Shown here: one piece after another, positions 1,827 to 43,417 of the stretch
Numbering within the stretch: position 1 is the stretch's first letter
Layout: each line of letters begins with the position of its first letter
From: Gekko japonicus
Lineage: Eukaryota
Length of the DNA: 56,074 bases
Assembly (NCBI RefSeq): GCF_001447785.1
Contig: NW_015175496.1
Coordinates: 1 to 56,074, forward strand
Reading direction: 5' to 3'
Made by a program: the position numbers and the translations under genes
Notes under the pieces: model-generated
The model's database searches: none
Told to the model about the DNA's origin: nothing
Seen by the model: only the letters and a program-made list of their open reading frames with translations

Positions 1827-2065
1827 ATGCGGTGGATGACATGGAGAAAGGAGAGATACTTCTCTGTTTGGATGGTGTTGCTTCACATTATATCCAAAGG
1901 ACATACCAATAAGTGTCTGAGGCATGAAGCCATCCCCGTGCCACACAAATGGTTCCAGTCAGGGGACCTCCTTATTGGTGGGATTGCTTCACAGATTGTC
2001 TATGAACTTCACTCATGCTTTTTCAACGCACAGCCTTCGTCACTAGACCTCTTTGGAGTTCCACA
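1827..2065 (+). pseudogene. Vmn2r: V2R-1 exon 1
   Basis: PVPHKWFQSGDLLIGG; donor CA|GTAAG at 2066; start codon ambiguous. Confidence 0.8.
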
Positions 2066-2246
2066 GTAAGGTTCCCCCCCCCCCACTTTCCAGCTCATGA
2101 ACCCCCGCAATTGTTTATAGAAGCTTCTGTACCACTGTTCAAAAATCAAAATAAAAAGAACCTGCATTGCAAGCCCTAGCAATGCTCCTTTACAACCACT
2201 TTCATCCTTTTCTAAATTCTTTAAATGCTGTGAAGAGTGGGCCTGC

Positions 2247-2568
2247 AGCTGCGGTGGCTCAAGGCTGTGGAAGGTCGGTAGTCCAGCAGTTCGAGACCCG
2301 GGTGCCGCATGATGGAGTGAGCTCCCGTCTCTAGTTCCAGCTCCTGCCAACCTAGCAGTTTGAAAGCGAGAAAATGCAAGTAGATAAATAGGTACCCCTT
2401 CGGTGGGAAGGCAACAGCGTTCCATGCACCTTGGTGTTTAGTCATGCCGGCCACATGACCACAGAAACATCTTCGGACAGAGCTGGTTCTTTGGCTTTGA
2501 AACGGAGATGAGCACCGCAACCCTAAAGTCGGACTCGACTGGCTTTCGAGCAAGGGAACCTTTACCTT
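2247..2568 (+). mobile_element. Sauria SINE
   Basis: GGAGTGAGCTCCCGTC...CCAACCTAGCAGTT core and ACCTTT tail. Confidence 0.85.
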
Positions 2569-2897
2569 ATAGCCACCCACTAAGCTTCATGCTGTGGGGA
2601 TTTGAATCTGTCTTCCTGATCTCAGTCCAGCATTCTAACGTCTACAGCGACTAGTGGTCGCTGGTATCATGATTTCTTCTTCATTCTAACAATGCTGAGA
2701 ATTCATGTTGTCTTGCTTAACATCAAATGTAAACCTACTTAACTCACCTTCTAAAATTTATTTGCATGTCCCTTTCTGCATTGTTCTCACGATCTTCCTT
2801 TTTAAACACAATCAAAGTGTCATAGAATCACAGAGTTGGAAGGGGCCACACAGGCCATCTAGTCCAGCCCCTGCTCAATGCAAGATCAGCCTAGAGC

Positions 2898-3261
2898 AAA
2901 TGGATAAGAGGAAGTACATCTTCACCCAAAGAGTGATTAACACTTGGAATTCACTGCCACAGGAAGTGGTGGCGGCTACAAGCATGGACGGCTTCAAAAG
3001 GGAATTAGATAAGCATATGGAGCAGAGGCCCATCAGTGGCTATTAGCCAGAAGGTATAGATAGGCGCTCTGGGGCAAGTGATGCTCTGTCTTCTTGGTGC
3101 TTGGGGGGGAGGTCAACAGTGGGAGGGCTTCTAATGTCCTGGCCCCACTGCTGGACCTCCTGATGGCACTGGTATTTCTGGCCACTGTGTGACACAGAGT
3201 GTTGGACTGGATGGGCCTTTGGCCTGATCCAACATTGGCATTTCTTATGTTCTTATGTTCT
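2898..3261 (+). mobile_element. CR1 LINE 3' fragment
   Basis: [23 protein letters not shown]...FKRELDKHM; tail (TTCTTATG)n. Confidence 0.9.
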
Positions 3262-3419
3262 GACAAGTGTATATAATCATAGACTCACAGAGTTGGAAGG
3301 AGTCGTACAGTGCATGTGCCTCTCATCACCTTGATCTATTCAGCTTTGAAAATGTCTCCCCCGTTCCTGCCATTTGATTACGTAGTATTCATTTTTTAAA
3401 AAGAATTTCTATCTGTAAG

Positions 3420-3625
3420 TGGTGTTAGTCTGTTGCTGCAAAATTGTAAAAAGCCCAGTAGTACCGTTAAGACTAACACATTTAATTGTAGCATAAGCTT
3501 TTGAGAAACACAGCTCTCTTCATCATCCGAATCCTCCATGCACCTGACAAAGAGAGTTGTGTTTCTCGAAAGCTTATGCTACAATAAAGTTTGTTATTTT
3601 AAAAGTACTACTGGGCTTTTTGCTA
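3420..3625. mobile_element. Long inverted repeat, Penelope-like element remnant
   Basis: Arms AAAAAGCCCAGTAGTAC...TTGTAGCATAAGCTTT and AAAGCTTATGCTACAA...GTACTACTGGGCTTTTT; family assignment is from recall. Confidence 0.6.
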
Positions 3626-4009
3626 TTTATCTGTAAGAGAACACGCAGAAACACATGAAGCTGACTTCTACTGAAGCTACCCTGACTGGCAGTGGCTCTC
3701 CAGGGTCTCAGGCAGATGTTTTACACATCAGCTACTACCTGATCTTTTTTAACTGGCTGCCAGGGATTGAACCTGTGCTTAGTGATATAGAAGTGTACTG
3801 CAGAATGTAATTTTCTTTTTGCATGTAAGTCATATTATGGTCATGAAAAAATAGCACAACTGTGAACCATCACATCCCTGCTTATACACTTTGCTTATAC
3901 AATAAGTTATTTCCACATTTTGTTAGTGTGCAGCAGTGATGAAAAAAGCAAACTCCATGGGATAATTAGGAAAGAGATCTAAACAAAGATTGTTAGGAAT
4001 ATTGTTTGG

Positions 4010-4812
4010 AATATTGTGTACATTCTGGTCACTGTATCGTTAAAAAAGTATTGAAGAGCTGGAAAGAGTACAGAAGAGGGCAACAACGACAACAATTAAG
4101 TGGTCAGAGTGCCTTTCCTATGAGAAAAGCCTAAAGAATCTGAGACTTTTCATTTCAGAAAAAAAATTGACTAAGGGGAGGCATGATAGTGGCTTGTAAC
4201 ATTATACACGGGGTGGTGAAATGGCCAATATTAGAACTTGGGAGGGGAGGTGCAACAAAGAAGTCGATGGGCCATGGATTCAGGATGGACAAAAGGAAAT
4301 ACTTCTTGACTCAGCAGATCGTATAATTATGCAGTTCACTGCCTGAGGACATACTGATGGCTGTGAACATAGATGGTTTTAAAGGGGGCTAAGACAGATT
4401 CCTGGAGAAGAGATTCATCAGTGGAGGCTGGCCATGGTGACTAAATGGAACCTCCTCACTCAGATGCAGTGAATTTCTGAATACTAATGGGGCAGAGAAA
4501 CTGCTTTGCATGCAGACGTTTCCAGGTTCATTTCCTGGCATAGCCAGTTAAAACGATCAGGTAGTGAGTGATGTGAAACATCTCTACCAGAAATCCTGGG
4601 GAACAGCAGACAGTCAGAGTAGACAACGTTGACCTTTGGCCAGTGGTCTGATTCAGTATAATGGAGCTTCATGTGTTCACTGGTGCTAGGAGACAACACT
4701 GGTGGAAGCCTTAAGTTCTATGTTCTTGTTGGTGTCCTTCCAGAGCACCTGCCTGGTCACTGTGTGATACAGGATGCTGGACTAAGTGGACCACAGGCCT
4801 GATCAAGCAGGT
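4010..4812 (+). mobile_element. Old CR1 LINE 3' fragment with nested Squam2-like SINE (~4490-4678)
   Basis: Degenerate version of the CR1 at 34807 (GGAATATTGTGTACATTCTGGTCAC...GAAGAGGGCAAC...). Confidence 0.75.
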
Positions 4813-4970
4813 CACCTCTTCAATTTTTATCTTGTGATGTATAGATGCCTTCTTAGTACATTAAAACTAATGGTTTATATCTATTTATTTATGTTCTTCA
4901 TGTACTATGGGCCAGAAAGCAAATTATTACTGACATGGAACATTCCATTTAGTAGGTAAATGTATCCTGG

Positions 4971-5323
4971 GAGCTGTGGTGGCTCAAGTGGTTAAGAGGC
5001 TGAACTTCAGGCTGTGGAAGGTCAGTAGTTCAGTGGTTCGAGACCCGAGTTGCCACATAACGGAGTGAGCTCCCGTCTCTAGTTCCAGCTCCTGCCAACC
5101 TAGCAGTTCGAAAGCAAGAAATTGCAAGTAGATAAATAGGTACCACTTCGGTGGGAAAGTAACAGCGTTCCATGTGCCTTGGTGTTTAGTCATGCCGGCC
5201 ACATGACCACAAAAACATCTTCGGACAGCGCTGGCTCTTCGGCTTTGAAACGGAGATGAGCACCGCAACCCTAGAGTCGGACTCGACTGGCTTTAGAGCA
5301 AGGGAGACCTTTACCTTTACCTT
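4971..5323 (+). mobile_element. Sauria SINE with TSD
   Basis: TSD TAAATGTATCCTGG at 4957-4970 and 5324-5337; (ACCTTT)n tail. Confidence 0.9.
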
Positions 5324-5391
5324 TAAATGTATCCTGGATACAGAGAGAAGAGAAAATGACATATGAAATTATGTCCAAACTTTACTTACAG

Positions 5392-5683
5392 AATGGTGAT
5401 GAAGTTCTATCAGCATGTTCTAGCCTTGGCATTCGCCGTAAATGAGATCAATGAGAATCCCAAGATTTTGCCCAATGCCACTCTTGGGTTCCATATCTAT
5501 GACAGCTACTATGATTCCAAGATGACCTATCGTACCATTATGGACCTGCTCTTCCATTCAGACAGATTTCTCCCAAATTACAAATGCGGTACTCAGACAA
5601 ATGTAATAGCTGTCATTGGGGGACTTGAGGCCGATGTCTCCTTCCATATGGCAGACATCTTGAGAATCTACAAAATTCCTCAG
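5392..5683 (+). pseudogene. Vmn2r: V2R-1 exon 2
   Basis: TACAG|A ATG GTG...KIPQ|GTAGG; 292 nt, as in both paralogs. Confidence 0.9.
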
Positions 5684-6039
5684 GTAGGAACTGTGCACAG
5701 ACAAATGGTGGGTGCTCAGATTTTTTGGAATGACTTGGGGATTCAGAAGAGAGAGCGTTATTATTGATCGGAAAACAAACCCTCTTGTCTTAAGTTTAAA
5801 GAGCAAGTTGCAAAGAGTAGTTGCTTCATATGGGAAAAGAGGGGAAGAAAGCATGTTATTGTATAGGGTTTTTTTTAGCATATATCTAACCAATGACCCT
5901 GTCCTGGAAGTTTTATCACAATTTGAAAATAAGTACTGGATTTTAACACTTCCTTTAGTAAATTTTCATGGCATACATACATAAAACATACAAAATATAC
6001 CTCCAAATTGATCCATAAAATATATGTACGTTTTTCTAG

Positions 6040-6903
6040 CTCACGTATGGCTCCTTTGCCCCTGAGGAGCAGGATACGGCAGAGTTTCCTACCTTTTATC
6101 GCATGGTTCCAAATGAAGCCCATCAGTATACGGTGATTATCCAGTTGCTTCTCCACTTTAGATGGATGTGGGTTGGGCTTCTTACTGGGGATGATGAGAG
6201 TGGGCTACATTTCTTGAAGACCCTGGAGCCCTTGCTTGCCCAGAATGGAATCTGTTTGGCCTCCACTGGAATAATCCCACACCAAGGCAAATGGGATAAC
6301 TTAGGTGACGTCAATGCTTTAATCTCAAATGTACACCAGTCTTTCACAGACAACTGAGCCAATGCATGTATTCTTTATGGAATGTCTATGACCATGATAT
6401 CATTGAATAATAAGATATTTCTGGGAGATCCAACATATGGGGGAAATGTCACGTTTGGAAAGGTATGGATTTTGACAGCCCAAATTGATTTCACATTATC
6501 TGGGATTCAAAGGGCCTGGGATTTCAACACCTTCCATGGTGCCATTTCCTTTAGTATTCACTCCCGTGAGGTTCTTGACTTCCCGAAATTTCTTCATTTC
6601 ATAAAACCTAATTGGAAAAAAGAAGATGGTTTCCTCAAGGACTTCTGGGAACAAGCATTTGACTGCACTGTTCCAGATCCTCAGAAGTCAATGAAGATTG
6701 AGGATCCATGTACTGGGGAAGAGAAGCTGGAGAGTCTTCCAAGGTCTGTTTTTGAAATGCACATGACTGGTCACAGCTACAGTATTTATAATGCTGTGTA
6801 TGCTGTTGCACATGCTTTGAATGTCATGTCCACATCCAGGCAAAATCACAGAACAAAAGATGGAGGGGAAAGTGTTGATCTTCAAGAAGTCCATCCTTGG
6901 CAG
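6040..6903 (+). pseudogene. Vmn2r: V2R-1 exon 3 (Venus flytrap domain, internal TGA)
   Basis: TTCTAG|LTYGSF...YRMVPNE...HPWQ|GTAAT; ORFs 6103 and 6382 are in the same frame. Confidence 0.9.
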
Positions 6904-7748
6904 GTAATCTTTCCACAATGAAATATCTTTGTTGCCTTGAACATGTTAGTGGAGAGTGAAACAACCCCTAGCTTTGCCCTCTGTCTATTACTGGGGAAAT
7001 GGGGTTTTTCCCATTTCTTTATTGACATAGTTTTGGGTATTCACATTCCCTCTTCTACAGGGAAAAAAAATAAGCCATTTCTTTTCACTCTTCTGCCATA
7101 GCAAAACTGTGTGTAGGAGAAAGTATGCAAAAACAAATCAACAAGCCATGGTGTTTCTGAATTTCAAAACTGAACCCTCAATATGTCATTGGCTCCCCTG
7201 TCCTTTTCTCAGATAATGGCATTGTTACTTCACTAAATTTAGTATGCAGAATCTGGATGGTGTCATGGCCAATCGATTGCTCTTCAGTCTCTTTGTGTTA
7301 TGCATCTTCCCTTTTTTGAGGTTATCTGTGGCAAAATTTCTAAGGCAATTGTAGTACCAGAATGTTCACTGTGAACTTTCAAAATGTTAATTATCCTGTG
7401 GGAGAACCAAGAGGCAATTGGGGAAGTGGACTGAGAAGCCAAAATGATCCTAGAAATGGGCGTCATCATACCCCATCCTGTTGTGCTCCCCCTTCACATG
7501 ATGGAAGGCCCAACAGAGCCAAGTAAATCAATTGGCATTAGATCTACCCAATATAACTGAGGTGCTGACTGGACCTACTGCTTGTTGGTTGCCCTGGCAA
7601 CTGTCTGTGACATGTTTGGCTGAAGGTGAGACACATGCAGTTGTCAGGGTTGAAGTGCTGCTTCAGGGGAAAGTGACCCATTTTTCCAGTGACTTTAATT
7701 GTCAGTCCACCCAATGTGAAGCATTCACTAGGCCCAATAGTAAATATT

Positions 7749-8112
7749 GGCCCCGGTCAGACGGCAAAGTTGCCGTGGGAGAGGCACGGATGGTGGGTGG
7801 ATTATCCGGGCGTGATCAAACCCCAACATCTGGGAAGTGGAGCGCACCGGTAGCTTACCGCCGACAATGCGCCTTAAAAACTAGTACCTCCAAGGTACTA
7901 GTAAGCGTTTGCCATGGGCTGCCTCCAGACAACCATGGTGTGATCGCGCCAGCACGCAACATTCACCTCCAGTCCCTCGTTTACCCGCCAGCGCCAAGGG
8001 AAGGACCCGTGGTGTGCCTCCAGCGCATCTGATCGTGTAATCACAGATCAAACTGTGCCGTGGCAATTAGCCATGCCTCCCCCCGCGATATCCGGCCTGT
8101 GTGACTGGGGCC
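7749..8112. mobile_element. PIF/Harbinger-type MITE
   Basis: TIR GGCCCCGGTCAGAC / GTGTGACTGGGGCC; 3-bp TSD ATT. Confidence 0.8.
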
Positions 8113-8422
8113 ATTTTCTAATTTTTTTTTTAATCTGTCATTATTTAGCTAAAATTCCTATGGCATATATGCTCTCCCCTTCAGTGTAATAACAGTGTAA
8201 TTGCAGGTGCAAGACGAACAAGACAGAGGAAGATCTGATTAGTACTATCTGATTTTCCCCTTCTTCCCTGGAATGCTACTATGTAAGGCTACAGCCTCAT
8301 CCAGCCTCTGGAACATGTCCTGAACTTGCCTGCCTCCTATCTTCCCTCCCTCGCTAGATTCCCTTTGTCTCAAAGCACAAAGTAAAGCGCCTTCTCCCTC
8401 TTATCCACTATAGGGATAATAC

Positions 8423-8633
8423 GGAGAGACTGTGGCTCAGTGGAAGAGCCTCTGCTTTGCATTCAGAAGGTCCCTAGTTCCGGTTCTGGCACCTCCAATT
8501 TAAAGGACCAGGCATTAGGTGATGTGAAAGACCTCATTCCCAGTCTGAGATCCTGGAGCACTGCTGCCAGTCTGAGTAGACGATACTGACCTTGATGGAC
8601 CAACAGTCTGATTCAGTATAAGGCAGTTTCATG
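8423..8633 (+). mobile_element. tRNA-derived SINE (Squam2-like)
   Basis: TGGCTCAGTGG A-box...GATTCAGTATAAGGCAG tail; related copies at ~3645-3775 (-) and ~43845-44055. Confidence 0.7.
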
Positions 8634-8761
8634 GGTATTACCTTGAGGAATGGTTTTAATGTGACATATAGTTAGGATTCTCTTTCCAGCTGTGTGGTCT
8701 TTCAGCAAAAGGATGCTCACCTGGAAACAACTTTTGATGTTTTTTTTGCTCTTCTCCGCAG

Positions 8762-8989
8762 CTTCACTCATTTCTTCAAGACATTTCATTTAACAACTCA
8801 GCTGGAGAAACGCTGTCTTTTAATGGTAATAAGGAAATTGGGGCTGGATTTGATATAATGAACCTGGTGACATTGCCAAATAAGTCCTTTGTTAGAGTAA
8901 AAGTTGGAAGGGTGGACCCTAGTGTTCCTGAAGGGAAACAGTTAATCATTCATGAAGATCTGTTTGTGTGGCAGACAGCTTTTAACCAG
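8762..8989 (+). pseudogene. Vmn2r: V2R-1 exon 4
   Basis: CGCAG|LHSFLQDISFNNSAGE...AFNQ|GTACG; 228 nt. Confidence 0.9.
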
Positions 8990-9210
8990 GTACGGGTTCC
9001 AGGGTGTTCCTGCAGGGTTCCCCGTTCTCCTGTGGATGACTTGGGAGTTGTGATTTTCCTTTGATGCATTTTGTAACCTTTTAATGCATGATCAGTCTCT
9101 CTCTCTCTCTGTCTCACCCCCCTCTCTACCTCTCTCTCCCTCTGTGTGTGTGTGTGTGTAAAGAGACACTTACTGTGCTGAAAACTAAATTGACATGTGG
9201 AAAATGGTCA

Positions 9211-10090
9211 TCTATATTCTAATAGCGAAGTGGCCCCCGTGCATGCGTATATCTAAATCTGCGCACCGGGGGCACTTGGGGGGGAGGGAGATTTTTGTGC
9301 ACACGTGGGACGGTCCCCAGGTGTGCACAAAAATCCTAAAACTAAAAAAAAAATATCGGGGGGATACTTAAATCCCCCCGAAACTGACAGAGCGTCCCCT
9401 GCGCATGACAGCAGCGAGGAGCCAAGGGGGGAGAGGCAAGGGGGGAAAGGCAAGGGGGGTGAAGGAGACAGAGGAACCAGCGGGATGGGGGGTACTTACC
9501 TCCTCCTGCTGCTTCCTCTGCCTCCCCCCGTGAGTATCGCGGGCCCCGTCCCTTGTCTATATATCTAATATCTAAATCTGCACATAGGGAGCACATGGAG
9601 GGTAAATAGATTTTCATGCACACTTGGGGCATTCCCCCACTGTGCAGAAAAATCTGAAATGTTGAAAAAAACTTTATGGGGGTACTTAAATCCCCCAAAA
9701 GTAAAAGAGCGTTCCCTGTGCATGCGCAGAGAAGACACCACAGGGAACTGTGGCAGAGCCACACAGGGCTCACCGCTGTTGCTGCTGGTGGTGGCAGTAG
9801 AAACCTTGGTGGGCTGGCGGCTGGGAGCCATGGTTGTTGCTGCTGTAAGTGGGAGGGGGGAGAAGCCTGGTGGCCCCAGCAGCTAGTAGCCACGCTGGGC
9901 TTGCCACTGTTGCCTCTGCTGGTGGGGGGGAGGAGAAGCCTGGTGGGCCGGCAGCTGAGAGCCATGGCTGTTGCTGCTGTTGGCAGGGGGGAGAAGCCTT
10001 GGCGGGCCCAGTGGACTGCCTGCCTGGCTCTCCTGTGGCCGCCTCCTCTTCCTCCTCCATGCAGAGCTCCTGCTGGTTCAGCTTTAATTT
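9211..10090 (+). mobile_element. GC-rich repeat, two tandem Helitron-like units
   Basis: A|TCTATATT start at 9211; hairpin CCCGTGA-GTA-TCGCGGG then CTTG ending at 9555; second unit starts TCTATATATC at 9556 and repeats the first ~160 bp. Confidence 0.45.
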
Positions 10091-11234
10091 TCATGATTTG
10101 TTAGGTTTGGGGAGAATCAGATGCCATTTCTTCAGTGATCACAAATGACTACCTGTTGGCCATTCCTGTTTGTTTTCAATGAAGGACTGTGCTGAGTAGT
10201 AATGTTCTCCTGTCTGCTTCTCAAATTTTACTTAACAAATAAGAAAAAAATATCTGCCACGATCAACAAGTACTAGTTGAATATTGTGTTGGTACTATTC
10301 TGTAGACAGGCAGGCTATAAATAAATACTACTTTATCTTTCTGCAGACTCACTTCTTGTTAGCTAATACACAATAACATATTTTCTTTTTTTCACTTTTT
10401 TAAATAAACTTGTATTAATTTTTAAGTTACAATAACAAAAAAAGAAAAATAGTTTCTGATTACTTCTGCACTAAGCCAAGGATGCTGAGAACTTTGATGC
10501 AAACATGATCCCGAGGCAAGTTTAACCTGATCGAACAATCTTGATTATATGCAAAATGAGATCTAGCTTGGATTGCTTCTGATTTTAGTTATACATTTTG
10601 TCAAACAGCTTTTCAGCTGTGGAGGAACTTCTTGTGCTATAAGGCCAGGTCATAATTCGGTTGTGAGTAACAAATTGGTTTTGAAGTTTGCAATAATGTT
10701 GCACCTCATAATCATCAACCAGACATAAATTCTTAGTTATCTGAGAAGAGGAATGCATTCCCTGAGGTCATTATCAGGTTATTAATATGATGTTCTTTTC
10801 AAGCATGAAATTGTTGTAGGAAGACCTGCCATCACATTTGATTAAATAGCCCTAGAAGGAAACAATATCTGTGTTTTGCTTCTGTGCAGTCACTATCTAT
10901 TAAGTGACTGTCAGGTTAGCTATATTCATGGGCAGATGTTGAAAGCATACAGATATGTCTTAGTAGTAAGTCTCAACTAAATCTCATTTTTTGGTCTTTT
11001 TAAAATATGCCTTTTAACTATCAGAAGAGGAGGAGGAAGTTGCACCCGAAAGGGGGAGGCGGTCATCAGAAATTGCAAGAAAGTTTGTAATCAAGGGAAT
11101 ACAAATAGATTCATTCAGATGCAGTATTCATTTACTTCTATACCCCTTAATTACAACCACAGATCAGAAGTTGAGCTGAACTGGAGTGATGTCAAACATC
11201 CCTTTCCTAAACTCCTTTTTATTTTCTTGTATAG

Positions 11235-11361
11235 ATTCCACCCCTTTCTCTGTGTAATGATTATTGTCATCCTGGTTATCACAAGAAAAAGAAGGAAGGA
11301 GAGAAATCCTGCTGTTACCATTGTGCTCCCTGCCCAGAAGGGAAGATTTCAAATGAGATAG
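11235..11361 (+). pseudogene. Vmn2r: V2R-1 exon 5 (cysteine-rich domain)
   Basis: ATAG|[43 protein letters not shown]|GTAC; 127 nt. Confidence 0.9.
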
Positions 11362-11908
11362 GTACATGATGTATTCTACTGGTTTCCCAGTACTCATGGT
11401 TAATCACAATTAAAATTTCTGTAATATGTAATATTATGTAATATGTAACCACATAGTAAATCAGTAGATTGGGAGGTCTGCTAAATGTTTGAAGAACTTC
11501 TGCATGGAGATCACACATTCAGATCACACATAATGTTAGATCAGTTCAGTTCAGTTCATAATGTTAGATCATGCAGATCCATTCCGCAAAGAGTGGCACT
11601 TCCAAGGACTCCAAGAGTCCCTTGCATCAGGGAAAGTCTTCTTGTGTGAGGCTAAAGTATCTCTAATTGTGGAACAAATCTGCAGTTTCCAATCCATTCA
11701 ATTGTGCAGCCACAGCTAGGATTCTCTTTCCAGCTGTGTGGTCTTTCAGCTTGCACAGAAATCTACTTAATGCTCAGCTAGGATATTAAGGACTCCAAAA
11801 GGGGGAGGAAATCAATTAATTAGGTTCATGTATTTGCTATTCATTTATTTCTGAGGTATGAGTAAATATGAACTATCCTGACATCTGCAAGACCAAGTTC
11901 ATCTAGGT

Positions 11909-12101
11909 CAGGGTTGGCCAAACTTGCTTAATGTAACAGCCACACAGAATAAACGTCTGATGTTTGAGAGTCACAAGACATGAACAAATATTACACACAT
12001 GTTTTTATTGGAAAATATGCAAATTTGATTTTTATTAACATTAAATTAAACTGTGTGAAAGAGCTGCATGCAGCTCCCAAGCTACAGTTTGGCCACCCTT
12101 G
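11909..12101. mobile_element. hAT-type MITE
   Basis: TIR CAGGGTTGGCCAAAC / GTTTGGCCACCCTTG; 8-bp TSD ATCTAGGT. Confidence 0.85.
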
Positions 12102-12344
12102 ATCTAGGTATTGGTCCCCAGTATTGTTTCTAAAGTGTATGTGTGTTGGATCTTTCTTGAAAGTAGATGCATGAATGTACATGCAGGATGAACAGAGCTA
12201 TAAATTCCCCTTTGTACAGAACTGCAGAATCAGCATACCCATAGGTGCCAATGTTCCTCTCTTATCAAAGACAGACACAATAATCTTAATGCAAATATTA
12301 ATTGTTACTGGGATGGCTACTCTTCTTCTTTTTTTCTTTCCTAG

Positions 12345-13246
12345 ACATGGATGATTGCATCAGATGCCCAGAAAATCAATATCCAAGCAAGGACCAAAGT
12401 GATTGCTTTCCTAAAGTTATAAGCTTCCTGTCTTTTGAAGAAAGTTTAGGTGTCAGTTTGTCATCAGTTAGCATTTCTTTCTCCATGATCACAGTGTTAG
12501 TGCTGGCGACTTTCATTAAGCACAACAATACCACTATAGTCAAAGCCAACAACCAGGATATCACCTACATTCTTCTGATCTCTCTTCTGCTTTGTTTCCT
12601 ATGTTCCTTGCTGTTTGTTGGGAAACCAAATGAGATGACCTGCTTCCTACAACAATCTGCTTTTGGGATTGTCTTCTCAGTGGCTGTTTCTTGTGTTTTG
12701 GCCAAAACCATCACTGTGGTTGTAGCTTTCATGGCCACCAAACCAGGGTCTAACATGAGGAAATGGGTAGGGAAACGACTGACCAACTCCATTGTCCTGT
12801 CCTGCGCCTTTATTCAAGTGGCCATTTGTATGATCTGGCTAGGAAATTTCCCTCCTTTCCCAGATTTTGACACACAGTCAATGACTGAAGAGATTGTTGC
12901 AGAATGTAATGAAGGATCTGCCATCATGTTTTATATTGTCCTCAGCTACACGGGACTTCTATCCATCATCAGCCTGACTGTGGCTTTCTTAGCCAGAAAG
13001 TTGCCAGATACTTTTAATGAATCCAAGCACATCACCTTCAGCATGCTTGTGTTTTGTAGTGTCTGGGTGTCTTTTGTTCCAACCTACCTGAGCACTAAAG
13101 GGAAATCCATGGTAGCTGTGGAGATCTTCTCCATCTTGGCCTCCAGTGCTGGATTATTGGTGTGTATCTTCTTTCCAAAATTGTACATTATTTTGTTGAA
13201 ACCTCAGTTGAACAACAGGGATCTGCTATCAAGAAGGAAGAATTAA
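12345..13246 (+). pseudogene. Vmn2r: V2R-1 exon 6 (7TM domain)
   Basis: CCTAG|[11 protein letters not shown]...RRKN*; open frame. Confidence 0.92.
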
Positions 13247-15193: not shown

Positions 15194-15346
15194 CACTTTG
15201 GAACACATGAAACCCCTGTGTTAAGAACTAAGGGGGGAAAACAGCTTTGTCTGCTACAACCTAGACTAACACACTTTGGAAAACATGAAACTCATGTGTT
15301 AAGAACTATGGGGGAAAAAACAGCTTTGTCTGCTACAACCTAGACT
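15194..15346. repeat. ~78-bp tandem duplication upstream of V2R-2
   Basis: CACTTTGGA...CTGCTACAACCTAGACT twice. Confidence 0.85.
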
Positions 15347-33500: not shown

Positions 33501-36500
33501 AGAAATTTCTTCAAGATATCAAACCCGCTTGGACTAAGCACGGCAGTTTTTTTGAGGCATTCTGGGAACAAGCATTTGGCTGGTCCTTTCTAAATTCCAG
33601 CGACCACATGAGTACCTATGAAACATGCACTGGGGAGGAGAGGCTGGAGGGCCTCCCCGGGCCTGTTTTTGAAATGTGCATGCTTGGCCACAGCTATCGC
33701 AATTATAATGCTGCCTACACCATAGCTCATGCTCTGCATGCCATTTACATCTCTCAATACAAACAGAGAGCATTGGTGGATGGGAAAAGAGTTGACCTTC
33801 AAGACGTCCAGCCTTGGCAGGTAACTTTTTCACAACACCATGTCCTTTTCTGTTTTCCTTTTGTTCCTTATATAGGAAGCAAACAGTGTATTCTGAACTT
33901 CTAAAAATATGCTTTATCCTAAGTCTGTCTAATTCAGCACTGTAAAGTGTGATTTTCAGTGACTTTCCAGGGTCTCAAATGAAGCTAGCATCTCTCAGCA
34001 CTACTTTTTACTAGCATATCTCAGCACTACTTTTTACTAATGTGTTACAGTCTTCCACTAGACCACATTTTGTTCTCTTTTTCCTTCAGCTCAACCAAGT
34101 CAGATAAAAATAATAATAAAATCTGATGATTCAGATGGCACTGCTTTTCTTCCGTTTTTATAGGTCTGGTTCTTGGTTGGATCAGGAGAGGTGTTGGGAG
34201 TGTGAAGCAGGAGTTCAGACAAAAATGAACTCTGCATATCCTCAGCTGCCATATATCTTAATTTCATTCACTTGAATCTCAAATAAGGGCCAACAGTGCC
34301 TGTTATGTCTTCCACCATAGAAGATTTATCTGTTCTGCATGGTGAAGCATGAGGAGGATGAAAGAAGAGAGAAGTTTATTGGCACAATTTGTTGTTTTTG
34401 AAAAACAATGAATGAAGATTAGATTTCTTTTAGTTATAGTATCTTCACTCCTCTTTCATACAGCTCCACTCGTTTCTTCAACACATTTTGTTTAACAACT
34501 CAGCTGGAGAAACAGTGTCCTTTAATGAGAAGATGGAAATAAATGCTGGATTTGACATTACAAACTTGGTCACATTCCCAAACAGGTCTTTCCAGAGAGT
34601 GAAAGTCGGAGAGGTAAATGACAATGCCCTGGAAGGAAAAGATTTCATTATTCAAGAGGATCTAATTGTGTGGCAGAAAAGTTTTAACCAGGTATTTATT
34701 TATTTGCTTACTTCATTGAAATCTAGGGTTCCCAGGTTTCCTGCAACAACTGGAAACTGTCTCCAACAGCCCCCAACCCCCACTGTCACTTGGAATGTCA
34801 GATGGGTGAGACCTTATTTGGAATACTGTGTGCAGTTCTGGTCACCACACCTTAAAAAGGATATTAGAGCTTTGGAAAAAGTGCAGAAAAGGGCAACTCA
34901 AATGATAAAAGGGTTGGAACACTTTCCCTATGAGGAAAGGTTAAAGCGCTTAGGGCTCTTTAGCTTGGAGAAAAGACGACTGAGGGGTGACATGATCGAG
35001 GTTTATAAGATTATGCATGGGAAAGAGCTGGTAGAGAACGAGGTACTTTTCTCCCTTTCTCACAATACAAGAACTCGTGGGCACTCCATGAAACTGCAGA
35101 GCGGTCGGGTTAGAACGGATAAAAGGAAGTACTTCGTCACCCAAAGAGTGATTAACACTTGGAATTCACTGCCACAGGAAGTGGTGGCGGCTACAAGCAT
35201 GGACGGCTTCAAAAGGGAATTAGATAAGCATATGGAGCAGAGGTCCATCAGTGGCTATTACCCACAAGGTATAGATAGGGGCTCTGGGGCAAATGATGCT
35301 CTGTCTTCTTGGTGCTTGGGGGGTCAACAGTGGGAGGGCTTCTAATGTCCTGGCCCCCCTGGTGGACCTCCTGATGGCACTGGTATTTCTGGCCACTGTG
35401 TGACACAGAGTGTTGGACTGGATGGGCCTTTGGCCTTATCCAATATTGTCGTCTCTTATGTTCTTATGTTCTTATGGGGATACTGTAAAAAAAAAAAACC
35501 CACCCACATTGTCATGTAAATAGAATGGGCTCATTTCCAGGGCAAATGAGGAAGTGAAAAAAAAATCATTGTCACGTAAATAGCATGGGCTCATTTCCAG
35601 GGCAAAATAGGAAATGACATCACGCCACTCCAGGAATCGGCACATCCTTCAGCTGGTCAGCAGGAACTCTATAGAATATTAGATTGGAATGATGTCACCT
35701 CTGGTTTCACCCCAGAAATTATGCCACACTATCAACATAAAAGAACTGTGATGTCTCTGCACCCAGCATGGAGCAGCGGTTAAGTGTGTGGACTGTAATC
35801 TGGGAGAACAGGATATGATTCCCCACTCCTCCGCTTGCAGCTCCTGGATGACCTTGGGCAAGCTATAGTTCTGTCAGAGCTGTTTTCTCAAGGACAATTC
35901 TGGAAAGAGCTCTCTCGCCCCCGCCTACCTTACAGGGTGTCTGTTGTGGGGAGGGGAAGGGAAAGGAATATGTAAGCTACTCTGAGTGAACAGTGGGGTA
36001 TAAATCCAATCTCCTCCTCTTCCTCCTCAATTCACCTGTGGGGCAGTAAAGAAGAAGAAGAGAAGAAGAGATTGGATTTATACCCCGCCCTTCACTTAGA
36101 GTCTCAGAGCGGTTTACAAACTCCTTTCCCTTCCCCTCCCCACAACAGACACCCTGTGAGGTGGGTGGGGCTGAGAGAACTCTGACACAAACTGCTCTTT
36201 TTCAAGGACAGCTGTGCCAGAGCTTGTGACTGACCCAAGGTCACATCAGCAGGTGCAAGTGGAGGAGTGGGGAATCAAATCCGGTTCTCCCAGATTAGAA
36301 TCCGTGCACTTAACCACTACACCAAACTGGCTAACCATCAACCAGCAGCTGGCAACTGTATTTATACCCCACTTTTCTCCCATATGGACCCCCGAAGTGG
36401 CTTACAGCATTTTCCATTTTATTATCACACCAACAATATGAAGTAGTTAGGTGGAGAATGTGTCTGGCCCAGCATGTTTCCATGGCAAAGTAGAGATTCA

Positions 36501-39115
36501 AACCTTGGTCCCCTCCATACAACAGCCATTACAAATGTGGCTTTTTTGCCCAAGCAGGTCCCAGAATAAATTTGCTAGAATGTCAAAGGGGACCCCTTTC
36601 TACCTTTCCCACCAGTGGAAAAACTCGTTGTTTCCAACCCAATACCCTTCATGACTGGGATAACAATAGTGCATTATTAGAGAGGTAAAGGTTGGTATTC
36701 TTTCACTCTAAGTGTCAATGGTTTAATCATACATCAACAGATGAACACTAAAATAATGTCTAATATATTCAGCCCTAAAGTTCTTTCATGGTTTTTGATA
36801 GGTGGTGCCCCTTTCTGTGTGCAATGACTACTGCCTGCCTGGTTACCAGAAGAAAAAGAAGGAAGGAGAGAAATTTTGCTGCTATGATTGCATCCTGTGC
36901 CCAGAAGGAGAGATTTCAAGCCAAAAGGGTAAGCAATGCATGGTACAATTCCAAACAGAAGAACATCCTTTTAAACTATGGAGGTCCTGCCCTCTTCCGT
37001 CTCTCACACACGTGATTTTCCCTCCAATTTTATTTGTTCTTTTCTGGCTGAGCATCCCCTTTATCCATTTTCTTCTTATTTGAAAGATTATGGCTGTCCC
37101 ACTGTGTCACATTATTATAGTTTGATGCTGGCTCAGCCCAGGGACTTGAGGAACGAGACAAATATCACGTCCTTAGCTGGTGCTTCTAAAAATGTAGAGG
37201 GGAAAAGGTTAGGTGGGGTAAAATCTCTGAGGTGAATCAATAATAACTGTGAGGTAACTTAGTAAATCCACAAACTCCAGTTAATATCTTTCCAGCAAAT
37301 AAGGGTTTTCAGCTTTTCACAAGGTCTTAGAACCTTTGAGGCTTTATTTTGTGTCTGTTAAGCACTCCAGTATAACTGACTATTTAAGTTTCAGAAGGTA
37401 GGGATACAATATGTACCCAATTCCTTCTCTTGAAACAAACCAGGGATCATTCCCCTCTTTTGACCTGTCTCCCTTTTCACCTGGGCAGGGAATCACTTCT
37501 CTAAACTAGAAGCTCTGTCCTTTTTCCTGGCCTGAATGGGGGTCTTCAGTGATCCTCCCACTCCTCCTTGCCACCTTCCCAGTTCTCAGTCAGTGTTAAA
37601 CTGAATTCTCTTCAGCAGTCAATTCCCAGCTCTTCCTTCTCAACTGAAGCAATCCTATGAAAACTGTTTGAGCAACCTGTCACTCAAAAGTTCTCTGGCT
37701 CACTGAGGCATTAACCCCTCACAGTCTGACACATGTTTATACAGGACTTATGAGCTTTCAAAGAACCGTCCATCACATAAACCCTTAGACTTCAATATAT
37801 TTAGGTGGGTGTAACCTTAGATAGGATTATTCTGGTAGTATACCAAACTTTCCAACATACTGATAATACTGATGACCATTAACCAAGTGGTTATACCTTT
37901 GATTATACCTTTCATGTTAGCATGGGGTTTCATCCTCCCAGAAGGTTACGGCCATTTGAGCACAGGTCAAAGAACCCAGTGTGTTTCATTGCTGTCAGTT
38001 CAGTCAATCAACTCTGGATCATAGATTGCATGTAATAAAGGCATGCACATTAATTTGATTTCAAAGCTAAAACCCATGAAGTGTTAACTGCATGAAGAAG
38101 CATAGATACTGTATTAGATTTTAATAACATATAAGTGAATATGTGAATTGGCTGTAAGGACTGGCATTATATGATAAGACCTTTTTTTTTTTCCTTTTCA
38201 GACTTGGATGAATGCACCCAATGCCCAGAAGATAAATATCCAAGCAAGAACCATGATCAATGTATTCCCAAAATGATAAGCTTTCTGTCTGCTGAAGAAC
38301 CTTTGGGGATCAGTTTAGCCTCTATTGCAGTTGTTTTTTCCCTGTTCACTGTCTTGGTGCTTGGAACATTTATAAAGCACAGAGATACCCCCATCGTCAA
38401 AACCAGCAATCAGAATATCACTTTCATTCTCCTGATCTCCCTTCTGCTTTGCTTCCTCTGTTCCTTGCTCTTCCTTGGAAGACCTAGAATGGTGACCTGC
38501 TTTCTCCAACAACCAGTTTTTGGGATCATCTTCACAGTGGCTGTTTCTTGCATCTTGGCCAAAACCATCACTGTAGTTATAGCTTTCATGGCCACCAGAC
38601 CGGGGTCTAAGATGAGGAAATGGGTGGGGAAAAGGCTGACTAATGGCATTGTTCTTTCATGTTCCCTTATTCAAATGTGTATTTGTGCGGTGTGGCTAGG
38701 AACCACTCCCCCATTCCCAGCTGTGGACACAAAGTCAATGACTGAACAGATAATCATAGAATGTAATGAGGGATCTGCAATCATGTTTTATGTTGTTCTG
38801 GGCTACTTGGGCCTTCTGTCCCTCATCAGCTTGGCTGTGGCTTTCCTAGCCAGGAAGTTGCCAGACAGTTTTAATGAAGCCAAGTTTATCACCTTCAGCA
38901 TGCTGATTTTTTGCAGTGTTTGGGGGTCTTTTGTTCCAACCTACCTAAGTACCAAAGGGAAATACATGGTGGCAGTGGAGATCTTCTCTATCTTGGCTTC
39001 CAGTGTTGGATTACTGGCTTGTATCTTTTCCCCTAAATGCTACATCATTCTTCTGAGGCCAGAGTTAAACAAGAGGAAACAGCTAATATGGAGAAAGAAA
39101 GAAATTGTCCTATAA
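27307..39115 (+). CDS. Vmn2r: V2R-3: intact vomeronasal type-2 receptor, 880 aa, close paralog of V2R-2
   Basis: Exons 27307-27521, 29534-29825, 30526-31392, 34464-34691, 36802-36928, 38202-39115. Exon sizes match V2R-2 and the frame is open. Confidence 0.92.
29534..29825 (+). CDS. Vmn2r: V2R-3 exon 2
   Basis: MVTKFYQH...KIPQ|GTAGG. Confidence 0.92.
30526..31392 (+). CDS. Vmn2r: V2R-3 exon 3
   Basis: TTTAG|LIYGPF...QPWQ|GTAAC. Confidence 0.92.
31829..32170. mobile_element. hAT-type MITE
   Basis: TIR CAGGGGTCATTTCG / CGAAACGATCCCTG; TSD TTGGTAAG. Confidence 0.85.
32221..32425. mobile_element. hAT-type MITE (CAATGTTCCCTCTAAG family)
   Basis: TIRs plus TSD CTGGCAAC. Confidence 0.88.
32645..33152. 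mobile_element. Harbinger-type MITE
   Basis: Degenerate GGC..GTCACAC TIRs; internal palindrome AAACTAGTACCTC-T-GAGGTACTAGTTT shared with 7749-8112; absent from V2R-2. Confidence 0.7.
33449..33820 (+). pseudogene. Orphan 3' half of a V2R exon 3 inside V2R-3 intron 3
   Basis: Open frame [26 protein letters not shown]...[17 protein letters not shown]...QPWQ|GTAAC; clearly diverged from the resident exon 3. Confidence 0.88.
34464..34691 (+). CDS. Vmn2r: V2R-3 exon 4
   Basis: TACAG|LHSFLQH...SFNQ|GTATT. Confidence 0.92.
34807..35473 (+). mobile_element. CR1 LINE, 5'-truncated, ORF2 C-terminus open
   Basis: [19 protein letters not shown]...LEKVQKRAT...[20 protein letters not shown]...WNSLP; (TTCTTATG)n tail; possible TSD ATGGG; absent in V2R-2. 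Confidence 0.93.
36049..36331 (-). mobile_element. Squam3-like SINE, V2R-3 specific
   Basis: Near-identical to 23060-23321; absent at the paralogous site ~22410. Confidence 0.8.
36802..36928 (+). CDS. Vmn2r: V2R-3 exon 5
   Basis: GATAG|[11 protein letters not shown]...SSQK G|GTAAG. Confidence 0.92.
38202..39115 (+). CDS. Vmn2r: V2R-3 exon 6 (7TM)
   Basis: TTCAG|[11 protein letters not shown]...KEIVL*. Confidence 0.93.
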
Positions 39116-41666
39116 TATATGTATCTTCAATAGTGTCTACAGATTCTATATGTTGGCCTTTTTCAAGAAGCAGGCCAAGGCTACCATATATGTCGGTCCA
39201 ACCTATTCTACTCACATGTTCAAAACAAATTCAATGTATCTGTTAATCATGTATATGAATGGCAAATTGTGAATTAAATTTATGAACTGAACAGAGGCAT
39301 GGAGAGTGATATCATAGGCCCTAGAGCAGAAAAAAAAAGAGGAAGATATCGTATTGAATGGAACTAGTGAAGTGGAAGAGAGGCACTGACCTGACCTGGG
39401 CTGGATCTGGGCTGCAGAATGACAGATGGTGACTATCAATAAACTGTGCATGATTTCTTTTCTTGAAAATTCTCATAGAGCATTCAAATCCCTTTCATCC
39501 CCCTTGCAGTGAATAACTCTTTTGCTGTTGTTGTTTTTTATTCATTGTTACTACTGACCACTTTGGAAAGCTGGAGAAAGGTAGCTTTGTGGCGTGGCTT
39601 TCAGGAAAGATGGTACCAATTTCCAGAACTCCTCGATCCCATTATAGGTAAAATGCACAAATCTCACCCTGCATCAGAATTGACTTGCATTCATGAAAGA
39701 TGGTCCTTTCCCACCACTGGGACAACCCTCAGGTTTATAGAAAAATATATTTTTAAGTGAGGGGAGATTTATTATCCTTTTTTTAAAAAGGAAAGAAAGA
39801 ATAGTGAGCTCTCACAATGTTCCATGGAGAGATCTTTGCCGCCATCTTGGGAGTTGCCTATTACGAAGGCTGAGGTCTTAAATACCATTTTAAAAAGAGG
39901 TAGTGTGCTGCATAGTTTAACCAGTGTGGTCTCTACCTCAACCTCCACCTGACAGACTGAACCCCAGTGGCTTCTGAAAGTACTAATTCCCAGATGAGTT
40001 TTGAGGTAAATGGGGGAGGGGGACAGTAACTTTTATTTACTTCCTTTTGTTGAAAAAAGGTTGTTGAATGAAGAGTCTTGAAATGATAGACAAGCAAAAC
40101 ATGCAGAATTTGCTTGGCCCATGCAGTTATAAGTTTTTAGGTGATAATTTATTGGTGCAGAGAGTAGTTCTGTGCTAAGTTTTTATTCCTGGGGTGAATT
40201 TTTGGCCTTTCCATAACCTTAGGAATCTCTTAATATAAATGCATTTTTCATCTGGAAATGCCAATCACTTTGCTTTTTCCCCCTAAAAGCCATACTTTGA
40301 GACATATAAACTTCCAGGGAAAGAATTTATCCCAGCCTATAACTCTGAAAGATAGGAGGAGCTGGTGGCAGTGGGAGAAAGGCATAGACAAATGTGTCTG
40401 GGTTGGTTTCAGAAGTCACAGGAGAATATGTTTTTCACAGTTGCTGCTAGTCTCAAGTATTTAGCAATTGAAATAACTTTCTGCTAACACTTTATGCATG
40501 AATACAGCATGAACAAAGGGTAAAAAATAGGGCAAAAACTATGGGCTCAAAGTAAGTGACAGGTGGGAAGAAAAGTTTTAATTAAAATACAGTTCTGAAC
40601 ACTTCTTGCTTATAGACATAACAGTGCAAAATATGGGGAGGACATTTTTGTAGGTAATTTCATGGATAGGGTAAGCAGATCGTTCCTGAGGATGAAAGGT
40701 CATCCACTGGCAGGTGATTGCACAGAAGGGGACAGATGAATTTCCCTGGGGACAGAGTTCCAGAGGTTTGAATCATCACTGAGAAGTAAAAGATAAGCAG
40801 TTTGAGAATGGGGGAAAAATCAAATCTCTACTTCTAAAGGGACAGTTGAAGCTTCTTGCTTTGGGAGATACCTACATGTCATATTCTTGTGTTCTTGACT
40901 TTTACCATTATAGAAGGAGACCTAATCTTCTGTCTTTTCCATATGTGAAAGACATCTATCTGAAATCCCAGAGAGCTGCCACTAGTTCCAGTAAAAATAT
41001 CATTGTTTATCAATGACAGAGGTACATGACATAGTCACACCTTTAACCAAATTCCCATTTTCTGGAATTTTTATTCCCTACTATGGAATTCCAAGTTGGT
41101 TAGTTATGACTTGCGCGGATAGATAAATACGTTGATGTGTCTTCTGCAGTTCTGATCTCTCTCTATGTGTTGGAAACAATGGTTAACACTCTATGTCTAA
41201 TACATCTTGCCCTTGCACTGTTGAGCTCAGAATAAAATACAGACCTCAAAGCTCTAAACAGAGACTTATGGCAAAGTCCTTGGGCAGAAACACCCTCAAG
41301 GGACTGGTACAATATTAGCTTTCTAACACATAAGAGAGGAGGTAATTAGCCTTTCAGTTAAAGCCACAAGTCAGCATTCTCAGATATTATTTTTATTACT
41401 GTTCCATCATGATCATTCTTTAGAGAACTGCTCCCTTCTTCTGAGAAGAATTTTCTGGCCTGACTGTATGAATAGATGGCCAGATTTGTTCAGACATGTG
41501 TGGTGAAAACTGGGAGACATCTAAGGACTCTGTTTAAATGATACCTGGAAATCCCAGTGGATTCATTAACATTTATGGCAGATTTGGCACAGACTGTTTT
41601 CTCTGTTGGTGAGCCTATATTTCAAATTTGGAGCTAATGTAATAGTGGAGGTTGAGGGCAATGCAA

Positions 41667-41668
<2 letters not shown>

Positions 41669-41710
<42 letters not shown>
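41669..41710. repeat. (AG)n microsatellite
   Basis: About 21 AG units. Confidence 0.95.
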
Positions 41711-41712
<2 letters not shown>

Positions 41713-41837
41713 TACTTAAAGTGGTTTACTGTGGACAAGCCAAGGTTTGAACTGTCATATCTGAATCTAGATCAGAGTGGAAAACACTGTTTTAAGTAAC
41801 AAAGTCGATCTTTTTCACAGGCCATAAACGTTCACAA

Positions 41838-42010
41838 AATCATAGAATGTTAGAGTTGGAAGGTACCTTGCAGGTCATCTAGTCCAACCCCCTACACTCT
41901 GCAGGAGCATAGCCGAAAGATAGCCCTACAACATGCCCGAAAGATGGTCATCCAGCCTCTGCTTGAAAACATCCAGCGAAGGAGCATCCATCACCTCCTG
42001 AGGCAGTCTG
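41838..42010 (-). mobile_element. CR1 3' end
   Basis: ATCATAGAAT...GAGTTGGAAGG...GGTCATCTAGTCCAACCCC is the reverse of a CR1 tail. Confidence 0.7.
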
Positions 42011-42777
42011 TAAAGTTCTTTGTTCAAGATCCAGAATCCAGAACTTAACTTCAATTATGGGGAAGAGAATGTAAAACCAAAACACGGGTAGATATGAAGT
42101 CAAAATGGTTCTATGAATGACCGGGGTGGTGTGACTACTAAAACTTGGTGGAGGGCGGGATCCAAATTACCTATAAGGTCTATTATGTAACTTTGAGGAA
42201 GACATTCTCTTGCCGCTTAGAGAAATGTTCTCATACACCTGTACGACTGTCCATTATTTTTGTGTCACGTTGCAATGCAACTGTCCTCTCAAAATACTAT
42301 TGGTGGTGCCATGTGAATGCTGTTTTTGTTTATTTGTTTACAGTGTGGTGGCACATTCTTACATGTTCCTGTAAAGGGATACACTTGCATGTCTGAATCA
42401 GCCCTATCCTTCCCTATATCATTGTCATGATGATTTCAAAAGGGTGGGAGGAAAGATGGCATAGAAAGGTGATCAAAGATTCAGGCAAAGAGATGCAGGT
42501 AAAGATGAAATTCTTAAGGATAAGGAGAATGTTAGGTTTTACAGCCATAAACACTGAATTCAGAAGTGGGGTGTGAGAGAGGACTGTTTGACGTGTGGTC
42601 GTATTCGGTGCAGCCAGTGTAACCTACCCTTTCTCTCTCTTTTTTATAGAGATTCAGGTGGCTGCAGCCAATGATGGTTAGAAACTGTGGCCAGGGTACA
42701 AGCAAATATTAGCTCCTAGTAAGTCACAAGCTCATAGCGCTCTGGTTGAAGACGTGCTGAGTCACCACCACAGCACT

Positions 42778-42816
42778 GGTATTTGTCCTGGCCCCACATT
42801 GCTTTTGTACATTGTG
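42778..42816 (-). other. 23-RSS of VH-1
   Basis: CACAATG + 23 bp + ACAAATACC. Confidence 0.9.
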
Positions 42817-43280
42817 AGCTTCCAGCACAGTAGTATGTGCCGGTGTCTCCTGTCTGCATGCCTCTCATCTCTAAATAAACCTGGTTCTTGGAAGTGTCTC
42901 TGGAGACGGTGAGGCGGTTTCTCAGGGAGCCAAGATAGTGCTTGTTGTCATTCCAAAAAACGAGACACAGCCACTCCAGGTCTTTCCCTGGGGGCTGACG
43001 AATCCAGCTCACTGAAGACCCCTCATCAGTGAGGGAGAATCCATAAGCGTAGCAGGTGAGCCGAAGGGTCTCTGATGCCCTCAGCTGTGCTGGTCCAGAT
43101 TGGTCCAAGGTCACTGCAGACTGGACACCTGGAGAGAAGGATGGAAAGGGTCTATTATGAAAAAGACCTGGGTCTTCAAAGTAGCAGAAGAGAAACCAGG
43201 ATGAATGAGATTGTGTCCATGAAAAGGCACTTACAGAGTGGAGCAGCTAACAGAACCAAGGCCAGGAGCACAGAGTGCAT
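42817..43280 (-). CDS. IGHV: VH-1: complete IGHV segment (clan II-like, VTL-SGP/GFSL type)
   Basis: Leader 43280-43235 ([15 protein letters not shown]|GTAAGT) and V exon 43128-42817 ([13 protein letters not shown]...LTC...[13 protein letters not shown]...[15 protein letters not shown]...[10 protein letters not shown]). Confidence 0.92.
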
Positions 43281-43409
43281 GGTCCCTTCTGGAGGGAAGA
43301 CAGAAGGGAAAAAATAGGGGAAGAATGAGTGCTGTTGACCTCCAAGTCACACTTTGACTGAAGACAGGATTGTAAAATCCCGCAGATAAGAGGGGCCTGG
43401 GTGAGGGAT

Positions 43410-43417
43410 ATTTGCAT
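43410..43417 (-). promoter_or_regulatory. Ig octamer of VH-1
   Basis: ATGCAAAT 130 bp upstream of the leader ATG; a second, inverted variant ATGTAAAT lies at 43429-43436. Confidence 0.85.

Follow-up and report, generated by a model that had tools for sequence, protein, structure and literature searches.

V2R chemoreceptor genes interleaved with germline heavy-chain V segments in Gekko japonicus: a probable history of tandem V2R and VH block duplication

Results

Here we describe a stretch of 56,074 nucleotides from Gekko japonicus (assembly GCF_001447785.1, contig NW_015175496.1, positions 1 to 56,074 of the forward strand; hereafter the window), in which V2R chemoreceptor genes are interleaved with germline variable segments of the antibody heavy chain (VH, IGHV-type). 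From left to right, the pseudogene V2R-1 (+) is followed by VH relic A (-), V2R-2 (+), VH relics B1 and B2 (-), V2R-3 (+) and four VH segments in a row, VH-1 to VH-4 (all -), after which a further V2R (+) begins (Table 1). We consider it probable that this is a real genomic arrangement built by tandem segmental duplication of blocks of one V2R and one VH, the VHs being most likely part of a working V region of the immunoglobulin heavy-chain locus (IGH). An earlier note on this DNA had described three forward-strand V2Rs, each tail-to-tail with a reverse-strand VH piece of clan II, and all four of its coordinate claims hold. V2R-2 is flanked by relic A and relic B1 and V2R-3 by relic B2 and VH-1, so that both are foreign genes with V segments on either side, of the type known for olfactory receptor (OR) genes among TRAV segments, with some of the flanking V pieces being relics and membership of one and the same locus being presumed.

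As to how far the alternation extends, a point that the note had raised, the RefSeq model XP_015281485.1 begins to the right of VH-4; it lies on the same scaffold as XP_015281483.1 and XP_015281484.1, the models of V2R-2 and V2R-3, and carries the consecutive accession number. Its first exon is probably spurious, since it is GC-rich and its 72 residues are unlike a V2R signal exon, but the model still places a fourth V2R on the forward strand to the right of the VH block, which is thereby enclosed by V2Rs on both sides. Neither family is obviously the host of the other, and interleaved is the right term. Around this exon, 53060-53512 forms a GC-rich block with open frames in several phases on both strands (GC content 0.516 in the 2-kb bin 52001-54000).

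By domain content and exon layout, the three six-exon genes are V2Rs. Using exon pieces of V2R-2 and V2R-3 in tblastn, we obtained six colinear exon matches for each of them, all on the forward strand, and Pfam found 7tm_3 with E values of about 1e-81 to 1e-85 and ANF_receptor with 1e-21 to 1e-23; an NCD3G domain is listed for XP_015281484.1. The RefSeq V2R models were compared exon by exon. Those of V2R-2 and V2R-3 begin at exon 2 and differ from the window at split codons only, and neither gene has an in-frame stop in any exon, the exons being examined singly. V2R-1 is a pseudogene in this assembly: on translation, exon 3 is interrupted by an in-frame TGA (6355-6357), and the exon-by-exon mapping of the RefSeq V2R models yielded no protein for it. 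The view that the V2R half of each pair had been retained is therefore not general.

Several additional features were observed in and around V2R-3. Its intron 3 spans ~3 kb compared to ~1 kb in V2R-2 and contains the 3' half of exon 3 once more, as a partial copy (33446-33862, +) that is absent from V2R-2 and is 68-69% identical to the real exon 3 in protein and ~83% in DNA, with no stop in the aligned frame. Directly 3' of exon 4 lies a retrotransposon tail (34700-35472) in frame with the exon (open reading frame (ORF) 34488-35345), of which a 94% identical copy is found in intron 1 of V2R-1 (2899-3261); we take the tail to resemble the C-terminal end of a CR1-type long interspersed nuclear element ORF2. 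Upstream of exon 1, a 152-bp unit occurs twice in tandem with 100% identity (26733-26884/26883-27034) and only once in the V2R-2 copy, so that the repeat is either very recent or an assembly stutter. In addition, two short interspersed repeat families are dispersed in both orientations over V2R introns and VH spacers.

All four VH segments carry the features of germline IGHV genes, namely a split leader with a V-set exon, a recombination signal sequence (RSS) with 23-bp spacer and an exact or one-mismatch octamer, with reptile VH-like V-set proteins being nearest. In VH-1, an exact octamer (ATGCAAAT, 43417-43410) precedes the leader (ATG 43280, 46 nt, GTAAGT donor), an open V exon reaching to about 42824 (Pfam V-set E 7e-13) and an RSS made of CACAATG, the 23-bp spacer and ACAAATACC, which ends at 42778. 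The leaders of VH-1 to VH-4 comprise 46-49 nt with GT donors, their frames are open with Cys23, Trp41 and Cys104 visible, and Pfam V-set E values range from 2e-11 to 3e-14. Heptamer-23-nonamer arrangements on the minus strand are located at 42816, 45477, 45221, 47157 and 51634. The best matches in the PDB are antibody heavy chains, of the IGHV2-5 type for VH-1 and of the VH3 or nanobody type for VH-2, and the nearest database proteins of VH-1 are five V-set proteins of Gekko kuhli with 64-72% identity. Just downstream of VH-2, a tandem duplication of ~250 bp (45065-45311 versus 45312-45567, 92.6% identical) has given this segment an orphan third framework region (FR3) with its own RSS, in which the heptamer is the consensus CACAGTG compared to CACAGCG in VH-2.

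Two side observations concern the VH segments and their relatives. The spacer below VH-1 (41155-41561) and the spacer between VH-3 and VH-4 (48619-49222) share two colinear blocks of 72-74% identity, which could be an old VH-spacer duplication or a common repeat. The clan-II VH proteins of Gekko kuhli (KAL8168689-93, KAL8177269-72) are all labelled UNVERIFIED_CONTAM in GenBank; two contigs, of 133.5 Mb and 62.4 Mb, carry near-identical sets of them, with locus tags 3-35 apart. To our knowledge, squamates are without a TRD locus altogether. Service of the VHs to a T-cell receptor delta locus, as in birds or frogs, was rejected, as a V-gene survey found no TRG/TRD V genes in Anolis or snakes (bioRxiv 10.1101/002618).

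The relics behind V2R-1 and V2R-2 could be assigned to the subfamily of VH-1. At the DNA level, relic A is 71.6% identical to VH-1 and only 62-64% identical to the three clan-III VHs, and the claim that the relics belong to one clan II-like subfamily and align specifically to VH-1 is borne out. In tblastn, relic A (14782-14561) matches VH-1 with 49% over 75 amino acids (E 4e-16). Gekko kuhli VH P0001 is nearer (63% over 67 amino acids, E 4e-24, including a translated stretch past the RSS), and framework regions 1 and 2 (FR1, FR2) are not recognisable in relic A in comparison with this protein. With an intact VH of Gekko kuhli nearer to it than VH-1 is, relic A may represent a lineage that is still alive elsewhere in Gekko. 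The colinear non-coding 3' flank that had been reported for relic A and VH-1 was recovered with blastn as 13959-14774 versus 42124-42934 (66.7% over 860 columns, E 2e-99, Kimura two-parameter distance (K2P) 0.31), and its bitscore of 351 stands far above the maximum of 28 in 200 shuffles. Relic B1 is a much closer paralogue of VH-1 (25794-26062 versus 43079-43348, 89.3% over 270 bp, E 2e-97); it is without an octamer, which lies beyond the duplicated unit.

This duplicated unit was delimited by self-comparison, which revealed two adjacent and colinear copies in the same orientation, 14725-26062 and 26061-43348. The unit starts in FR3 of relic A and ends in a VH 5' untranslated region (UTR), ~70 bp short of the octamer, and reading the junction sequences at base level showed only a TC microhomology at the tandem junction 26061/26062. 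Noncoding K2P is uniform along the unit, with 0.10-0.16 in V2R introns and flanks, 0.106 between relic A and relic B2 and 0.113 between relic B1 and VH-1; 10 of 12 blocks lie at 0.10-0.16, as in a tandem segmental duplication. The congruence of V2R and VH divergence, for which the earlier note had asked, is thus found throughout the unit, and the same noncoding K2P indicates equal age for its V2R and VH parts. V2R-2 and V2R-3 are 97% identical. A deletion of 3.4 kb, corresponding to 39715-43079, has stripped the left VH copy of its V-exon body, its RSS and its flank; the deletion junction, at 25795, shows a CC microhomology.

An older duplication, separating V2R-1 and relic A from the ancestor of V2R-2/3 and VH-1, is suggested by the same order and orientation, by the colinear flank with its K2P of 0.31 and by the V2R tree. 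In this tree, the nearest relative of V2R-1 is a Euleptes protein (83%) and that of V2R-2/3 a Heteronotia protein (80%), which together with the 97% identity of V2R-2 and V2R-3 indicates an old split of V2R-1 from the other two. Relic A is cut off at its 5' side exactly at the start of the V2R-2 upstream region, as would be expected if one breakpoint of a tandem duplication lay within the VH. Upstream of V2R-1, no VH relic was found in a search of 1-1865.

Adjacency of the two families was additionally observed in other squamates. Scanning the VH sequences of the window against ~370 V2R proteins, we found two RefSeq V2R models with VH sequence, Lacerta agilis XP_033026285.1 and Podarcis muralis XP_077773941.1. 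The former consists of V2R exons followed by two complete VH domains (Pfam V-set E 4e-25), which, being read through heptamer and RSS, are germline segments; in the latter, a clan-III FR3 piece stands at the start and is joined by splicing to exon 2 of the V2R. Both models are annotation merges, each of which requires a VH within intron distance of V2R exons and on the same strand, so that V2R/VH adjacency is not specific to geckos. The V2Rs of geckos and lacertids fall into separate lineage-specific expansions in the V2R tree (partial sampling), and no Gekko kuhli V2R is among the matches listed for a G. japonicus V2R query.

Table 1. Positions of V2R genes, VH segments, relics, duplicated sequence and repeats in the window
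Feature	Position	Strand	Description
V2R-1	1875-13246	+	Six-exon V2R pseudogene (tblastn, translation, Pfam 7tm_3 E 9e-81)
V2R-1 exons	~1896-2066, 5396-5686, 6040-6870, 8759-8992, 11235-11357, 12344-13243	+	
Flank downstream of relic A RSS	13959-14616	-	Non-coding, colinear with 42124-42777 below VH-1
VH relic A	14617-14790	-	Clan II; end of complementarity-determining region 2, FR3, decayed heptamer and nonamer; 5'-truncated; stop just after the Cys104 region
Left copy of duplication unit	14725-26062	+	Part of relic A, V2R-2 and a VH-B remnant; colinear blastn chain to 26061-43348
V2R-2	15804-25203	+	Exons 2-6 are RefSeq XP_015281483.1 (808 amino acids), 99-100% per exon
V2R-2 exons	15804-15947, 17896-18189, 19749-20618, 21594-21827, 22881-23006, 24289-25203	+	
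VH relic B1	25794-26062	-	VH-1 paralogue: 5' UTR, leader exon, intron and first ~17 V-exon codons (start of FR1)
VH relic B2	26061-26329	-	Paralogue of the upstream part of relic A (14725-14979), 84.8%; VH residues at 26062-26135 (tblastn)
V2R-3	27379-39115	+	Exons 2-6 are RefSeq XP_015281484.1 (808 amino acids), 99-100% per exon; Pfam
V2R-3 exons	27379-27522, 29535-29828, 30526-31395, 34461-34694, 36802-36927, 38192-39115	+	
VH-1	42778-43417	-	Intact-looking germline IGHV2-like segment, clan II; octamer, split leader, V exon, 23-bp RSS
Orphan FR3 with 23-bp RSS	45131-45310	-	Just downstream of VH-2; tblastn 86% to VH-2 amino acids 72-134; RSS at 45221
VH-2	45439-46063	-	Clan III; leader ATG 45932; octamer-like ATGTAAAT at 46056, one mismatch; RSS CACAGCG-23-ACAAAAACC
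VH-3	47119-47737	-	Clan III; leader ATG 47609; exact octamer ATGCAAAT at 47730; 23-bp RSS
VH-4	51596-52209	-	Clan III; leader ATG 52079; octamer-like ATGCAAAC at 52202, one mismatch; 23-bp RSS
First exon of XP_015281485.1	53194-53409	+	Amino acids 1-72 of an 875-amino-acid V2R model, 98.6% match, probably spurious; other exons past the window end
Interspersed repeat family 1	2262-2568, 5009-5317, 54320-54628		Copies of one of the two families ~90% identical, of the other 71-88%
Interspersed repeat family 2	19097-19334 and at least 8 further copies		As for family 1

Discussion

We propose a model in three steps, of which the two later ones are taken directly from mapped breakpoints. In the first and oldest step, which we infer, a V2R and VH block would have been duplicated with one breakpoint within the VH, the left copy keeping only the 3' part of its VH, today's relic A, and its V2R, V2R-1, would later have gained the stop codon. 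In the second, recent step, an 11.3-kb block reaching from FR3 of relic A to the 5' UTR of the next VH was tandemly duplicated through a non-homologous joint with 2 bp of microhomology. The right copy of the upstream part of relic A thereby became relic B2 (26061-26329), and the left VH copy lost its octamer promoter at the duplication itself, because the unit ended in the 5' UTR short of the octamer. In the third step, the later 3.4-kb deletion, again with 2 bp of microhomology, deprived this left VH copy of its V-exon body, RSS and flank. The proposal of the earlier note, that a V2R and a VH facing each other formed the unit of duplication, therefore stands for the recent event, with mapped breakpoints and even divergence, and for the older event it draws on order, orientation and the colinear flank; its accompanying rule of a retained V2R half does not stand. 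As to the VH half, described there as repeatedly crippled, relic B1 is not a product of gradual decay: the duplication breakpoint severed it from its octamer, and a single deletion of 3.4 kb did the rest.

Judged from their sequence features, the VHs most likely belong to a working IGH V region, which is favoured because four of them are well kept. The alternative that survives best, although we hold it to be rather unlikely, is an orphon cluster, in which copies of IGHV segments would have come to lie in a large V2R array remote from the working IGH and be unused for antibodies, with the same history of co-duplication. V2Rs on both sides of the VH block agree with such a cluster, as do the two relics among the six VH pieces of the window, with one more being the orphan FR3, and the sheer size of the V2R family, which counts hundreds of members in geckos (4770 matches at E<=1e-60, many from geckos). 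However, over a span of 10 kb four VHs have preserved open frames, donor-bearing split leaders, canonical 23-bp RSSs and exact or one-mismatch octamers, and such preservation is unusual in unused orphons of any age. In addition, Gekko kuhli retains several intact members of the clan-II family, and the VH/V2R adjacency recurs in two lacertids.

It should be noted that several points weigh against the preferred interpretation as a real, co-duplicated arrangement in a working IGH V region. The window contains no D, J or C segment, as would be expected of an orphon cluster. The RefSeq models apparently derive from the same assembly as the window and so provide no independent check on it. The lacertid evidence consists of merged gene models, in which V2R and VH share one strand instead of standing tail-to-tail. 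Third-position divergence between V2R-2 and V2R-3 in exon 6 is 0.04 and thus lower than the 0.10-0.16 of the introns, which points beyond a simple single event, possibly to constraint or to gene conversion of the exon. Finally, no alignment is obtained between the stretch upstream of V2R-1 and that to the right of relic A, so that the old breakpoint is a matter of inference only.

That the VH relics arrived independently of the V2Rs, by separate VH duplications or insertions, with V2R and VH never forming a unit, appears highly improbable. For the old pair, continuity from V2R to VH is indeed not evident, since 13252-13959 and 39109-42124 do not align with each other, nor does the sequence upstream of V2R-1; yet an independent arrival would have to repeat side, orientation and VH subfamily by chance, and the recent unit is continuous, with equal divergence throughout and a single junction. 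The least credible explanation is an assembly artefact in which V2R and VH contigs of different loci were wrongly joined: the source is probably a short-read scaffold (101,699 bp) and the 152-bp tandem repeat may be a stutter, but the three V2R-VH joints are of different ages and all free of N runs (the sole N run in the window is 55530-55935, with none in 1-55529), the copies are diverged and not collapsed, the diverged relics lie within 1-1.3 kb of V2R exons (relic A ~1.3 kb from exon 6 of V2R-1 and ~1 kb from exon 1 of V2R-2), and V2R gene models from two lacertid genomes include VH sequence, so that misassembly is unlikely.

Unrelated genes are also tolerated elsewhere in loci that undergo V(D)J deletion, examples being ADAM6 in mammalian IGH, where it separates VH from D, and the trypsinogen genes of TRB. 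These are single insertions or one local cluster, in contrast to the alternating cassettes of two multigene families in the gecko. Human IGHV orphons on chromosomes 15 and 16 are VHs with RSS outside the working locus and would be comparable if the gecko VHs were orphons, but they are not interleaved with a chemoreceptor family. In agreement with the earlier note, whose author was aware of no V2R/IGHV interleaved locus, our literature search found no description of one. The arrangement is nevertheless less unprecedented than had been supposed, since olfactory receptor genes are situated among TRAV genes (PMC4574546). In human, OR10G2 is located between TRAV1-1 and TRAV1-2 and OR4E2 between TRAV1-2 and TRAV2, and in mouse Olfr1507-1509 are located between TRAV1 and TRAV2, with sheep being alike (PMC4574546). 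Both cases thus place genes of chemosensory G-protein-coupled receptors between germline V segments, and the OR/TRAV arrangement is conserved across species (PMC4574546). There, two or three genes of class A odorant receptors occupy the 5' margin of TRA/TRD with no reported co-amplification, whereas in the gecko class C V2Rs lie with IGHV-type segments, were repeatedly co-duplicated and left VH relics behind. Recent tandem duplications are also found within the IGHV region of Anolis carolinensis (bioRxiv 10.1101/002618), and the gecko resembles it in recent kilobase-scale duplications that are concentrated in the V region and in a birth-and-death turnover that yields V pseudogenes; the duplicated units of Anolis have no reported non-immunoglobulin gene, whereas the gecko unit includes a V2R. 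The gecko case departs from these in that class C V2Rs are paired with heavy-chain V segments and that the two were duplicated repeatedly as one cassette.

Conclusions

Most likely, the V2R-VH pairing arose as a by-product when a region common to two fast-duplicating families underwent birth-and-death duplication. A functional partnership of the two was considered and rejected, with nothing in its support beyond adjacency. If the VHs form part of a working IGH V region and D, J and C segments are situated left of the window, deletional joining of these VHs to DJ would excise V2Rs in B cells, which should be harmless, since B cells are not expected to express V2Rs. A more far-reaching reading, which we put forward only tentatively, is that V2Rs have resided in the working IGH V region since before the divergence of geckos and lacertids. 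Distal VH-to-DJ joining would then routinely excise chemoreceptor genes in squamate B cells, and two families, each subject to stochastic and mutually exclusive choice, would share a chromatin neighbourhood and co-amplify as cassettes.

The finding also has a practical side: in two lizards, automated annotation has produced V2R models with fused-in VH exons (XP_033026285.1 and XP_077773941.1), and squamate repertoire counts of both families may therefore be distorted. With respect to the origin of V pseudogenes, duplication breakpoints and a deletion, and not slow decay, were at work here. If the VHs do constitute a functional IGH V region, squamates would represent a natural case of a large chemoreceptor family and antibody V segments expanding together. 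Such a case would bear on the origin of V pseudogenes, on the tolerance of antigen-receptor loci for foreign genes and on whether the repressive, choice-based chromatin of V arrays and of chemoreceptor arrays is interchangeable.

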